Shown piece after piece: positions 1 through 18,140 of a DNA stretch of 22,469 nt. The DNA is from Macrostomum lignano (taxonomy: Eukaryota), in the NCBI GenBank assembly GCA_002269645.1, contig NIVC01002217.1:169146-191614 (forward strand). The letters are read 5' to 3'. A program made the position numbers and the translations under genes. Below the pieces are notes generated by a model. The model did no database searches, was not told where the DNA came from, and worked only from the letters and a program-made list of their open reading frames with translations. Numbering within the stretch: position 1 is the first letter of the stretch; every line of letters starts with the position of its first letter.

Positions 1-3000
1 TCTCAGCCTGGCCGCGCTGACCTCCATCGCTCGGCTGGACGCCTGGGGAGCCGCCAACATCCTGGTGCTCGGAGCCCCACAGCCGGGCTGACGGGGCTGC
101 ACTGTGCCGCCGCCTCTGCGGGACGTCTTCCCCCACTGCGGCAGGGACGGCGTCACGGTAAGGAGGAAGTGATCGTGTGTTAGTTGGGATTCTGATCCCA
201 GATTAGTGGGATTCTGATCCCAGATTAGTAGGGATTCTGATCCCAGATTAGTAGGATTCTGATCCAGATTAGTAGGGATTCTAATCCCAGATTAGTGAGG
301 ATTCTGATCCCAGATTAGTAGGGATTCTAATCCCGGATTAGTGGGATTCTAATCCCAGATTAGTGAGGATTCTAATCCCAGATTAGTAGGATTCTAATCC
401 CAGATTAGTGAGGATTCTAATCCCAGATTAGTGAGGATTCTGATCCCAGATTAGTAGGGATTCTAATCCTAGATTAGTAGGATTCTAATCCCAGATTAGT
501 GGGATTCTAATCCCAGATTAGTGAGGATTCTAATCCCAGATTATTGAGGATTCTAATCCCAGATTATTGAGGATTCTAATCCCAGATTATTGAGGATTCT
601 AATCCCAGATTAGTGGGGATTCTAATCCAGATTAGTGGGGATTCTAATCCCAGATTAGTAGGGATTCTAATCCCAGATTATTAAGGATTCTAATCCCAGA
701 TTATTGAGGATTCTAATCCCAGATTAGTGGGGATTCTAATCCCAGATTAGTTGGGATTCTAATCCAGATTAGTGGGGATTCTAATCCCAGATTGGTGAGG
801 ATTCTGATCCAGATTAGTAGGGATTCTTATCCCAGATTAGTAGGGATTCTTATCCCAGATTAGTGAGGATTCTGATCCCAGATTAGTAGGATTCTAATCC
901 CAGATTAGTAGGGATTCTAATCCCAGATTATTAAGGATTCTAATCCCAGATTAGTAAGGATTCTGATCCCAGATTAGTGGGGATTTTGATCCCAGATTAG
1001 TGAGGATTCTGATTTCATATAAGTGGGGATTCTGATCCCAGATTAGTAGGATTCGGATCCCATATTAATTTGGATTATGATCTAATGACTTCTCAATTTA
1101 CGCAGGATTAGACTAATGACTGTTTACATCAACTAGTCTATTAGTTTAATAATCAGCACAACTAGTCCAACTTTAACCACTTGCTCGCATTTCCAGAGCA
1201 TAGAAATGCGATTCACGGAGGCTCTGTTAGCCGTGTCTGAAGCGTACAAAAACTTGACAAGCGCATCGGCTGCGGTGACCTTCAGTGAAAGCAACTCCAG
1301 CTGCAACCCGCTGCAGCCATGGACCAGCGGGGGATCAGTGGCCCGCTTCATCAAGTCGGTAAGTATTGGGGATGGGGAAAATAGGGATAAAATGCTGTAA
1401 TAATGTCTTATAAGGCTTGACTGTTGACTCTAGGGCCAAATCGTATTTAATAGCAGGTGGAAAGCTAATCTATAGACCACTGATTGCTAGTCTATAGACC
1501 AATGGATTGCTAATCTATAGACCAATGGATTGCTAATCTATAGACCACTGGATTGCTAATCTATAGACCAATGATTGCTAATCTATAGATCAATGGATTG
1601 CTAATCTATAGACCAATGGATTGCTAACCTATAGAATAATTCATTGCTAATCTATAGACCAATGGATTGCTAACCTATAGAATAATTCATTGCTAATCTA
1701 TAGACTAATGGATTGCTGATCTATAGACCAATGGATTGCTAATCTATAGACAATGATTGCTAATCTATAGACTAATTGATTGCTAATCTATAGACTAATT
1801 GATTGCTAATCTATAGACCAATGGATTGCTAATCTATAGACCAATGGATTGCTAATCTATAGACTATGGATTGCTAATCTATAGACCAATGATTGCTAAT
1901 CTATAGACTAATTCATTGCTAATCTATAGACTAATTGATTGCTAATCTATAGACTAATTGATTGCTAATCTATAGACTAATTGATTGCTAATCTATAGAC
2001 TAATGATTGCTAATCTATAGACCAATGGATTGCTAATCTATAGACCAATGGATTGCTAATCTATAGACCAATGGATTGCTAATCTATAGATCAATGGATT
2101 GCTAATCTATAGATCAATGGATTGCTAATCTATAGATCAATGGATTGCTAATCTATAGACCAATGGATTGCTAATCTATAGATCAATGGATTGCTAACTA
2201 TAGACTAATTCATTGCTAATCTATGACTAATGGATTGCTATCTATAGACAATGGATTGCTATCTATAGACCAATGGATTGCTAACCTATAGACTAATTCA
2301 TTGCTAATCTATAGACCAATGGATTGCTAATCTAAAACGCGTCATCCGCAGCTGCAAGGCCTGGACACCTTCCGCTCGGTGATCAGCTACAACGCCAGCT
2401 CGAACCGTCTCGAGGCTCCCTACGTTGAGTTCGCGGCCACCTTCAACGAGCTGGCCGATCAGCCAGTCGAATTTGTAGAGAGCGCCCGGTTCTACCCAGC
2501 CAACGCCAGCCTGCGAGTGCTTCGGACAGTGTCCGGCCGGAGTCTCGTCTTCTCCAACGCCTTTGTGGACTTCAAGAATCGGACTCTGACCGTTTGTGCA
2601 CCGATTGTGAGTGACTGGAATGCAGCCATGGATACCTGACTATTAATGCTCATGAATTGCTCATAAAAACAGAAATTAAACCAGCAATCGGCACCAACCC
2701 CCGTTGGAAAGCCAAAGAAGAATGGGATATTTTTTGAATAAACTAAAAATAGCTTTTGAACTTTCAGCCTTGACATCTCAGCAATTCCCCTCGACATAGA
2801 AATTAATCTCTGATCGATGGCACTAAATTTACAGACCATGAATACAGTCTATGGATTGCTAATCTATAGCCCATCGATTGCTAATCTATAGTTAATTGAT
2901 TGCCAATCTGTATCTTATGGATTGCTAATCTATAGTTAATTGATTGCCAATCTGTATCTTATGGATTGCTAATCTATAGTTAATTGATTGCCAATCTGTA

Positions 3001-17500: not shown

Positions 17501-18140
17501 CCAAGCTCTCAAGCAATGATTGCTCGGGCAAATGAAAAGTCTGGACCCAATCTCTGTCTGCCCTGATTTAATAGCGGCCTTTTCGTGCCATCGTATCTGT
17601 CATGATTTACGTCTCTGCTGAGCCTTGAGCCTGCCTCGCTGGAGTCCTACTCAGCTGTTTATGACATTGTGGAGCGCTCCGTTCCTTTGAGTTCGTCTGG
17701 CTCTCGTCTTCGTAAATGATTGTCTATGCTACGTATTGCTTATTTTGTTTAACAATAATCTGAGCTCTAGATAAAGCTACAACACTCTATCCGTTTGTCC
17801 TCTAAGACTCGAGGAAGGAGTTACTTAGTGGGAATATAATTAGGATTGCTAGTCTGATCTATACTCAATCAAATCTCCCTACCCCAAACCTCGCAGGCTG
17901 GAAAAGTCCCAGGAATCTGGCATCCTAAATTTACTCAACCTGAAGTACTTTCCGCGTAGGAATCCCGAATGCGTGTTTTCTGACGTCACAGCCGAGGCGG
18001 ACCCCATTAAAATGGACGGAGTCGCCGGAGCGTACATTGTGACCGGCTGCCTGTACACCTGCGGCCTGCTAATCCTGCTGCTTGAGCTGCTTTGGACTCG
18101 CGGCCTGAAGAAGTCGCCGCTGGATGCGGTCATCTTCTAG
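8526..18140 (+). CDS. Complete divergent ionotropic glutamate receptor-like gene, paralog 2, 13 exons, 848 aa. Exons: 8526-8775, 9586-9726, 10014-10124, 10799-10977, 11197-11409, 12718-12876, 13165-13419, 14492-14598, 14669-14762, 14880-15294, 15962-16167, 16554-16726, 17897-18140
   Basis: Exons sum to 2547 nt (849 codons including TAG), with no internal stop and consistent phases at all 12 GT-AG introns. Features: signal peptide MNNFLPPLLLLLLLLAQPS; LIVBP-like ATD (VCQEVGLSGIIG, YHWLLL, CLPLQPW); S1 VPPF...GCVGELQKGNADIS...ITTLR..MDFS; M2 WSAVGSFLQQGQD; M3 SYTGNLTAYLT; S2 KGTN, CITD, YCN, PEC; M4; about 10 N-X-S/T sequons in extracellular parts. Confidence 0.93.
8984..9522. repeat. Minisatellite, 23 bp unit AAGATTTCACCTCTCAAAGCA(C/T)C, about 23 copies (paralog 2 intron 1)
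   Basis: Tandem periodicity. Confidence 0.95.
9790..9972. repeat. Purine-rich (G/A) low-complexity tract in intron 2
   Basis: Almost exclusively A/G. Confidence 0.75.
10131..10772. repeat. (AGAT)n microsatellite, about 160 copies, with two AAAT variants (10471, 10495)
   Basis: Directly visible; fills intron 3. Confidence 0.98.
11499..12612. repeat. Minisatellite, 39 bp unit GATTGTCTATGGCCTCAAAACTCCTGGCATGTTTTGAGA, about 28 copies (intron 5)
   Basis: Tandem periodicity with no spacers. Confidence 0.96.
13524..14432. repeat. Minisatellite, 30 bp unit CCCTGATGTATGATGGTCCACTGTCTGATT, about 30 copies (intron 7)
   Basis: Tandem periodicity. Confidence 0.95.
15436..15718 (-). mobile_element. tRNA-derived SINE with CORE-like (MIR-type) central domain, antisense in intron 10 of paralog 2
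   Basis: Minus strand: head GGGGTTGTAGCCTAGGGGTTAGTGCG..., A box TAGCCTAGGGG (15711-15701), B box GGTTCGATTC (15666-15657), then CCTTGAGCAAGACACTTAACTC...TCAGTTCACCCAGCTGTAAAATGGG (15632-15577), resembling MIR CORE CCTTGGGCAAGTTACTTAACC...TCAGTTTCCTCATCTGTAAAATGGG as I recall it. The 3' end is approximate and no TSD was seen. Confidence 0.8.
16200..16510. repeat. Minisatellite, 35 bp unit GAGAATCTCACAGCTGAGATTGAGCTGTTAGATCT, about 9 copies (intron 11)
   Basis: Tandem periodicity. Confidence 0.93.
17081..17285. repeat. 45 bp tandem repeat, each unit with a CCAAT box (CTGATTGGC), 4 copies plus 1 degenerate (intron 12)
   Basis: (G/A)CTGATTGG at 17081, 17126, 17171, 17216; GTGATTGG at 17274. 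Confidence 0.85.

Follow-up and report, generated by a model that had tools for sequence, protein, structure and literature searches.

Two head-to-tail genes of Macrostomum lignano probably encode channel subunits of a flatworm-specific iGluR family, and one carries a candidate X-box promoter element

The diversity of ionotropic glutamate receptors (iGluRs) has been charted in a phylogeny that admits a sequence to the superfamily when at least four of the nine residues of the gate motif SYTANLAAF are conserved, that names the pore positions Q586 and D/E590, and that describes Phi receptors with C-terminal domains of 7-60 amino acids (aa) and, in some of these proteins, a relaxed SYTANLAAF (Ramos-Vicente et al., 2018). 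The word 'Platyhelminth' does not occur in that eLife study, and no flatworm genus or name appears in the main text of a 2025 AKDF phylogeny, which already includes uncharacterised AKDF clades of protostomes that shift in position with respect to Delta. Here we analyse a window of 22,469 nucleotides (nt) from the flatworm Macrostomum lignano (assembly GCA_002269645.1, contig NIVC01002217.1, positions 169,146 to 191,614), the plus strand of which carries two head-to-tail iGluR paralogs, copy 1 (window 1-7074) and copy 2 (8526-18140). They probably encode subunits of tetrameric ligand-gated cation channels that belong to a flatworm-specific family of the iGluR superfamily. Two other systems enter the comparison. 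The ionotropic receptors (IRs) of insects and other protostomes are iGluR-derived, and tuning IRs usually lack the amino-terminal domain (ATD) and one or more of the residues R485, T655 and D/E705. The typical targets of the X-box/RFX (DAF-19) regulon are ciliogenesis genes rather than receptor channels.

The nearest relatives outside the flatworms are uncharacterised lophotrochozoan AKDF-type proteins automatically named 'delta-1-like' (among them Pecten maximus XP_033737179.1, here P0023; Haliotis XP_067672970.1; and sequences of Mytilus, Owenia and Tubulanus), which fall in the same neighbour-joining (NJ) clade with 77-100% support. Shared with them are the turn LV-x-x-G-[TS]-N, the motif Y-[MI]-[TS]-D in S2 and, in part of the flatworm family, GPFTIT-x-x-R. 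Because the molluscan, annelid and nemertean relatives have Y-[MI]-[TS]-D and the G-[TS]-N turn as well, the altered ligand pocket is a feature of the clade and not peculiar to this pair. In contrast, the Q/R site holds Q in the flatworm family and E or N in the lophotrochozoan proteins, and the flatworm family differs from them in the pore QGQ[DE]FYP, an altered gate, an extra pair of cysteines in S2 and a conserved 14-aa tail, whereas the lophotrochozoan relatives keep the gate TYTANLAAFLTV.

Coding potential in the window appears as short stop-free blocks, one of which, over the pore region, retrieved M. lignano proteins when used as a query; splice sites were chosen by reading frame and GT-AG rules. 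Every junction of the resulting models is GT-AG and keeps the frame, and the tandem pair of paralogs that a first-pass annotation had read from the letters alone is confirmed:

1-7074, plus strand: copy 1, iGluR paralog, 5' end truncated by the window start
1-157 (partial exon 5), 1197-1358, 2352-2606, 3312-3418, 3507-3603, 4983-5397, 5513-5718, 5809-5981, 6831-7074 (stop), plus strand: exons of copy 1
8526-18140, plus strand: copy 2, complete iGluR gene of 13 exons, coding sequence of 2547 nt, 848 aa, stop present
8526-8775, 9586-9726, 10014-10124, 10799-10977, 11197-11409, 12718-12876, 13165-13419, 14492-14598, 14669-14762, plus strand: exons of copy 2
14880-15294, 15962-16167, 16554-16726, 17897-18140 (stop), plus strand: exons of copy 2, remainder
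8526-8594, plus strand: putative signal peptide of copy 2, MNNFLPPLLLLLLLLAQPSPLRC in translation, judged by its hydrophobic leucine run

Exons 6-13 of copy 1 (1197-7074) splice into an intact open frame of 552 aa with all key motifs, and the two proteins are 65.6% identical. An independent model supports the junctions: UniRef A0A1I8IN61 (P0005, M. lignano) is 97% identical to the assembled protein and has the same splice junctions over the overlap. It is a chimeric model in which the C-terminal half of the upstream gene is fused to the N-terminal half of the downstream gene; since it spans both copies, the tandem arrangement is also present in the assembly behind it. A contig look-up for P0005 and P0004, which are found only in UniRef, and likewise for P0104, returned nothing on record. 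We take both copies to be real genes, and the pair to be duplicates of recent to middle age (66% identical).

Pfam finds three domains in copy 2 in canonical order: PF01094 ANF_receptor/ATD (E 4.7e-9, residues 64-346), PF10613 Lig_chan-Glu_bd (E 3.9e-10, 429-539) and PF00060 Lig_chan (E 1.5e-24, 554-819). With HMMER, residues 47-834 align with GluK2, and the best 60 PDB matches comprise only subunits of the kainate, AMPA and delta classes, with near-equal scores of 112-124 bits among the three (GluK2, E 7.8e-35). The predicted copy 2 protein thus shows a signal peptide, an ATD, a clamshell ligand-binding domain (LBD) split by the channel, the membrane segment M1, a pore loop, M3, M4 and a 14-aa tail. 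A full ATD had been claimed for both copies; this stands for copy 2, but the ATD of copy 1 is only partly visible, as the window begins inside it, and its first exon is frame-broken. The motifs on which the comparison turns are:

15198-15212, plus strand: copy 2 pore-loop codons QQGQD (Q/R site Q, +4 site D)
5301-5315, plus strand: copy 1 pore-loop codons QQGQD
15285-15293, plus strand: copy 2 M3 gate, first part SYT, the motif being split by an intron and continuing as G-NLTAYLTV
15964-15987, plus strand: copy 2 M3 gate, second part NLTAYLTV
18096-18137, plus strand: copy 2 C-terminal tail of 14 aa, TRGLKKSPLDAVIF, with the family C-terminal motif K-x-x-P-L-D-[CA]-h-h-[YF] (h, hydrophobic)
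7030-7071, plus strand: copy 1 C-terminal tail of 14 aa, TFCCKQSPNRLPCY
14904-14921, plus strand: copy 2 AITTLR, with the Arg equivalent to GluA2 R485 and GluK2 R523 in the HMMER alignment to GluK2
16584-16598, plus strand: copy 2 CITDQ, with Asp at the GluA2 E705 position
16057-16071, plus strand: copy 2 AKGTN, ligand-contact turn 652-655, overlapping a coding X-box look-alike

With GluA2 and GluK2 the proteins share the order ATD-LBD-transmembrane domain, a QQG-x-D pore with an unedited Q and an acidic +4 residue, Arg485, an acidic residue at 705 and the canonical cysteine positions (C85 and C333 in the ATD, C736 and C793 in the LBD). The pore reads LQQGQDFYP in both copies; set against the GluA2 pore, Q586-Q587-G588-C589-D590, its Q/R site holds Q and its +4 site D, in agreement with the AMPA/kainate-like QQGxD pore described earlier for this DNA. 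The pore loop QQGQDFYPFAMSPR is nearly invariant over at least 14 paralogs, which argues for selection on ion conduction. Unlike AMPA and kainate receptors, to which they align with ~124 bits over 790 residues and outside whose clades they lie, the proteins carry the changes A618G, A621T and F623Y in the gate and E402 to T in the pocket, have lost P478, do not conserve T655, and end in a 14-aa tail. The gate changes are family-wide: both copies read S/AYTGNLTAYLTV in place of SYTANLAAFLTV, and SYTGNLTAY matches SYTANLAAF at six of nine positions, which is within the inclusion rule of the superfamily. Cysteines specific to the family are, in copy 2 numbering of the alignment, C707 and C721, C496, C433, and C281 and C292. 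Most members end in W-T-x-x-x-[KR]-x-P-L-[DQ]-[CA]-h-h-[YF] (h, hydrophobic). The altered gate, the extra cysteines and the short tails after M4 (estimated at ~15 aa) listed by the first-pass annotation are therefore all present in this pair.

In the ligand pocket the picture is mixed. The Arg485 column is invariant in the family alignment and Asp at 705 is conserved across the family, so that the pair of residues that binds alpha-amino acids is retained. Changed are E402 (to T), Y450 (to F), P478 (lost) and the 653-655 turn, which reads K-G-T-N-I; HMMER sets G-T-N on G653-S654-T655, MAFFT sets T653-N654-I655 one residue off, and in neither register is the canonical glutamate side-chain contact T655 conserved. 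The altered ligand residues noted earlier are thus real at 402, 478 and the 653-655 turn, but they spare Arg485 and the acidic residue at 705. Because this pair is kept, the products are most likely amino-acid-gated, Ca2+-permeable cation channels and not IR-like proteins that have lost amino-acid binding. With insect and protostome IRs they share the concept of an iGluR-derived receptor, proposed for ciliated sensory neurons, with lineage-specific tandem expansions. Unlike tuning IRs, this fast-expanding family keeps the ATD, Arg485 and Asp705, with only the 653-655 turn changed; none of these retentions fits the tuning-IR hallmarks, and the analogy to insect IRs is weakened by them.

The size of the family was assessed by an exhaustive HMMER scan of 1.8 billion cluster representatives with the pore exon as query. 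The scan gave 838 proteins at E up to 1e-3, in a stepped list: nine matches lie below 1e-30 at 44-60% identity, about 20 are 40-60% identical and carry QQGQDFYP, and a plateau of generic iGluRs follows near 30%. Nearly all close matches are from M. lignano, the exceptions being the monogenean Cichlidogyrus and one ENA contig, with the cestode Spirometra next. Counted as distinct at 90% identity over the pore segment, at least 14 lineages are present in M. lignano, which bears on the count of genomic paralogs proposed by the first-pass annotation. The ENA contig (ERZ25070786 ctg134105l; L005) is 20 kb long and filed as a metagenome assembly; its family member contains introns, has the pore AQQGQDFYPYA and is flanked by Tc1/mariner-type transposase fragments, so that it is evidently animal DNA, probably of a flatworm. 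In Spirometra sp. Aus1 (CM118282.1, 42.38-42.47 Mb; L007 and L008) two members, P0180 (AAHC03_021154) and P0176 (AAHC03_021153), lie head to tail on the same strand ~18 kb apart, and no ATD exons of the upstream member were detectable within 10 kb.

A full-length query was swamped by the poly-Leu signal peptide (three matches), and an LBD-transmembrane alignment was used instead. Scored on this core, the family reaches 320-465 bits, the lophotrochozoan 'delta-1-like' proteins (Pecten, Haliotis, Mytilus, Owenia, Tubulanus, Candidula) 150-207, and everything else ~95-137. Bootstrapped NJ trees were built without and with references from the eLife 2018 alignment (GluF1_Bbe, GluF2_Bla, GluD1_Hsa, GluD1-2beta_Sko, GluE1_Bbe and two plant glutamate receptor-like proteins) and with clade labels from PDB searches (P0122 is GluK1, 1889 bits; P0123 is AMPA-type, its best PDB matches all being GluA); they contain no NMDA or IR reference. 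In these trees the M. lignano core family has 100% support, copy 1 and copy 2 group at 73-91%, the flatworm group including Spirometra is found at 68-72%, and this group joins Logan group B, which shares the QGQ[DE] pore, at 79-83%. The lophotrochozoan 'delta-1-like' proteins and a Patella sequence are added at 77% with the references and 100% without them.

The AMPA and kainate classes do not take in the family. Their receptors form a separate clade at 70%; the family is divided from the AMPA clade (P0123) by bipartitions of 70-94% support and lies outside the kainate clade (P0122). For NMDA receptors, whose subunits have Asn at the pore Q/R/N site, the Q of the pore and the absence of any GluN among the best 60 PDB matches argue against membership. 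The Phi class (GluF) was considered on the strength of the 'delta-1-like' names and a scallop GluF paper and was unsupported once GluF1_Bbe and GluF2_Bla were in the tree: these two pair at 93% and attach, weakly and in NJ trees only, to AMPA and kainate at 24%. Amphioxus Phi also differs in having G at the Q/R site. Like Delta and Phi receptors in the sense of Ramos-Vicente et al. (2018), the family is AKDF-type with variable side-chain contacts. It adjoins Delta-type sequences at 64-94% without references; once GluD1_Hsa is added, support drops to 12-16%, for a grouping with GluD1_Hsa and Saccoglossus GluD. The single Epsilon reference, GluE1_Bbe, attaches to the lophotrochozoan and flatworm clade at 32%. 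The ATD cysteines C99 and C124 are common to Delta-type and lophotrochozoan 'delta-1-like' sequences and absent from the AMPA/kainate representatives, and the pair may be a marker of the deeper affinity of the clade. We therefore place the family, by sequence, as a branch peculiar to flatworms within a lophotrochozoan clade of AKDF type about which little is known, and not as the ortholog of a canonical synaptic class. The independent, lineage-specific expansion postulated by the first-pass annotation is supported by the fully supported core, its many lineages, its flatworm relatives and its position outside AMPA and kainate.

In the mechanism that we propose, the subunits would form tetrameric channels that bind an alpha-amino acid through the retained Arg485 and Asp705. 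With its side-chain contacts altered, the pocket need not have glutamate as its agonist; glycine, D-serine or GABA-type ligands would be equally possible, as has been discussed for Delta, Phi and Epsilon. Closure of the clamshell would pull on the modified M3 gate and open the pore, which, given Q in its Q/R site and D in its +4 site, should pass Ca2+ and be blocked by polyamines.

Several points weigh against this model of a functional channel pair. The gate substitutions lie at pore-facing positions, so that gating could be atypical or lost, and mammalian Delta receptors are reported not to gate on ligand binding. The one-residue difference between the HMMER and MAFFT registers at 653-655 makes any ligand prediction unsafe. 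The deep nodes of the trees have only 12-36% support, and the visible exon 5 of copy 1 is frame-broken. AlphaFold2 on the paralog P0170 with a 14-sequence alignment gave an unusable model (pLDDT 43, pTM 0.28). Literature searches on the gene identifiers, M. lignano iGluRs, a single-cell atlas and X-box/RFX in planarians yielded nothing usable; neither transcripts nor expression or functional data were found for the two genes.

The state of copy 1 bears on how many of the two genes are functional. The relevant features are:

1-157, plus strand: copy 1 exon 5 remnant with a disrupted frame; read straight, it has an in-frame TGA at 89-91
2335-2602, plus strand: gene-conversion tract, copy 1 side (exon 7, ATD-LBD junction)
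13148-13415, plus strand: gene-conversion tract, copy 2 side

Positions 1-157 match copy 2 when read from frame 1 to frame 0 and back to frame 1, that is, with a -1 shift followed ~70 nt later by a +1 shift. A pseudogene lesion, or else two indels in the assembly, would explain the disruption. That copy 1 is a pseudogene and copy 2 the sole functional gene is a real possibility that we place somewhat under an even chance: the in-frame TGA and the two compensating shifts needed for a copy 2-like reading favour it, and so do two predicted M. lignano proteins resembling the copy 1/copy 2 locus, P0006 ('VWFA domain-containing') and P0007 ('ATP-grasp domain-containing'), which read as iGluR-like and are likewise frame-scrambled. 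It is opposed by the intact 552-codon frame of exons 6-13 with every key motif, and by an unrelated region of the window (21060-21700, minus strand) that apparently needs paired frame shifts too, which points to assembly indels rather than to a pseudogene. This region is GC-rich (66%) and by eye resembles TM5-TM7 of a class-A G-protein-coupled receptor (LLVAIAFAACELP; LLGNLLVLADSYCNLALIALTNRKF) across two frames. Pfam scans found no domain in the GC-rich open reading frames at 20.8-21.7 kb, even when the frames were merged by hand, and the stretch may be a pseudogene, the product of assembly indel errors, or nothing.

The two copies also share a homogenised exon. Positions 2335-2602 and 13148-13415 are 98.1% identical in DNA over 268 bp, against 61-75% in the other exons, and this difference points to gene conversion between the two exons 7. 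The tract begins 17 bp inside the upstream intron and ends 4 bp short of the exon end. The introns of the two copies have no alignable sequence in common.

The promoter of copy 2 carries the following elements:

8389-8402, fitting the consensus on both strands: X-box (RFX-type) motif GTTGTCATGGAAAC, 124-137 bp upstream of the copy 2 ATG
8384-8389, minus strand: reverse CCAAT box (GATTGG), read from the sequence, abutting the X-box
8417-8422, plus strand: TATA-like element TATATA, of putative function, which follows the X-box after 15 bp and precedes the ATG by ~105 bp

As in the X-box/RFX (DAF-19) regulon, a 14-bp motif that fits the C. elegans-type consensus GTHNYYATRRNAAC stands in the proximal promoter (-137 to -124) with a CCAAT element adjacent. 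The distance of 124-137 bp from the ATG is in the usual range for X-boxes, and a CCAAT element beside an X-box is the arrangement of X-Y modules bound by RFX and NF-Y. No other string in the window matches GTHNYYATRRNAAC exactly; calculated analytically from base composition, the expected number of such matches is 0.0019 in 250 bp, 0.004 in 500 bp and 0.15 over the whole window. The 'perfect X-box' of the first-pass annotation holds as an exact fit to this degenerate consensus, but the motif is not the ideal palindrome GTTGCCATGGCAAC, with which it agrees at 12 of 14 positions. Comparison of the copy 2 promoter with the other loci and with the remainder of the window revealed no similarity, so it is not a repeat element. 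Two further X-box-like strings, at 16054-16067 and at the copy 1 counterpart at 5605, were rejected as regulatory elements, being coding sequence (LVAKGTN and VSKGTN, respectively).

For the recurrence of this arrangement a few related loci were compared, some from the M. lignano assembly at NCBI and some from other genomes. The pair of X-box and CCAAT element recurs in one M. lignano locus (L001, paralog P0019) and in one Spirometra locus (L007). P0019 has exact X-box matches at -449 and in intron 1, and the hexamers GTTGTC and GGAAAC appear again in its proximal promoter, where a reverse CCAAT and a TATA box lie downstream of them. The site in intron 1 is a strong X-box, GTCTCCATGGAAAC, at 12946-12959 of L001 (also at 12502 of L003 and 11186 of L004). 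Both sites are kept in three homeologous loci, in which the length of the intron differs by up to 1.8 kb; this conservation says nothing on constraint, because the sequence flanking the intron 1 site is identical too. In the Spirometra relative P0176, GTTGTC-ATG-AGAAAC, with a 3-nt spacer, is found at -122 and a CCAAT follows directly. Allowing up to one mismatch, no X-box was found upstream of the Cichlidogyrus gene, nor near the putative start of the ENA homolog (L005) or upstream of Spirometra P0180; for these latter two genes the start is uncertain. The pattern GTHNYY-AT-N0/1-RRNAAC, chosen after the Spirometra site had been seen, has five sites in 132 kb, three of which fall in the 3 kb directly upstream of family ATGs; without the trigger site the count is two of four (P ~0.003). 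The enrichment of X-boxes near the 5' ends of the family is suggestive only.

Whether copy 2 depends on RFX for its expression is, on this promoter, about evenly balanced. Expression specifically in ciliated sensory neurons would be less probable than RFX control itself, as RFX factors also drive non-ciliary neuronal and other genes, and as flatworms also have multiciliated epidermis and protonephridia. As to where the channels act, they could well serve the flatworm nervous system as ordinary amino-acid receptors, neuronal or neuromuscular, the X-box being a chance match or serving another purpose; we hold this tentatively, at a little less than even. Such a role would suit the complete iGluR architecture, the retained alpha-amino-acid binding core and the AMPA/kainate-type QQGxD pore, and half of the assessable loci are without an X-box. 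The tails end in hydrophobic-x-hydrophobic (VIF, IIY, FFY, VLF), a possible class II PDZ ligand or endoplasmic reticulum export signal, which would also fit. It is at odds with a family that is not orthologous to the AMPA or kainate classes, with the loss of the canonical glutamate contact T655, and with a recurrence of X-boxes near family 5' ends that is unlikely by chance.

In the ciliary-sensory alternative, the channels would be chemosensory receptors of ciliated sensory neurons, controlled by RFX and sent to sensory cilia, and an independent flatworm parallel to the insect IRs. We consider this possible but doubtful, a reasonable hypothesis with modest sequence support. The exact two-strand X-box beside CCAAT-like and TATA-like elements, at a chance expectation of ~0.002, speaks for it, as do the X-box-type sites of P0019 and the Spirometra relative and, with its post hoc pattern, the excess of sites upstream of family ATGs. 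The family moreover bears the marks of birth-and-death evolution, with tandem duplicates, numerous paralogs, rapid divergence and a possible pseudogene, and the tails are very short and without long synaptic scaffold domains. However, the Cichlidogyrus, ENA and Spirometra P0180 loci gave no X-box, RFX is not confined to ciliary genes, the ATD and binding residues that tuning IRs tend to lose are kept, short tails are common in Phi-class receptors too, and the literature search found no expression data. A bolder form of the ciliary-sensory reading, in which a flatworm family of RFX-controlled, Ca2+-permeable iGluR-type channels with a shared X-box/CCAAT module would act on sensory-neuron cilia as (chemo)receptors for amino acids in the environment, and would represent a second independent recruitment for chemosensation in parallel to arthropod IRs with the ATD and binding core kept, we regard as unlikely. 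It is very improbable that the proteins are no ligand-gated channels at all and serve, in the manner of Delta, as organisers of trans-synaptic contacts or adhesion, or else as obligatory silent co-subunits: their weakly supported place near Delta, the C99 and C124 pair and the altered gate would agree with this, but the almost invariant pore loop and the retained Arg485 and Asp705 do not.

Some features of the surrounding DNA can be added. A (GA/GAGAGA)n microsatellite, translating as ERERER, begins right after the copy 2 stop (18141-18190), and the first canonical poly(A)-type signal (ATTAAA) downstream of copy 2 is only at 19330. About 44% of the window consists of tandem-repeat arrays, 18 in number between 180 and 22422, with units of 4 to 144 bp (for instance 180-1067, 3814-4946, 10130-10773, 11487-12609 and 13521-14432); minisatellites of unrelated sequence are present in both intergenic regions and in the majority of the larger introns. 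Searches of the window for tRNAs and Rfam families found none.

The two genes correspond to uncharacterised predicted proteins in public databases and, by their alignments and trees, form part of a flatworm-specific subfamily of the iGluR superfamily, to which each of the features assessed assigns them. The locus documents a sizeable, undescribed flatworm branch of these receptors with pore, gate, cysteine and tail signatures of its own, and it shows modes by which the family has grown: tandem duplication, exon-scale gene conversion and possible pseudogenes. The recurring X-box/CCAAT promoter module is the one non-routine lead. Transgenesis is established in M. lignano (PMC7053086), which makes this species suited to a test of the X-box. 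If the link to the X-box is true, it would offer a simple handle on flatworm chemosensation, through one motif and one transcription factor, and would be a second case in which iGluRs have become sensory receptors. If it fails, the genes would be divergent amino-acid receptors of a little-studied nervous system, still useful for understanding the ligand specificity of non-canonical AKDF receptors.

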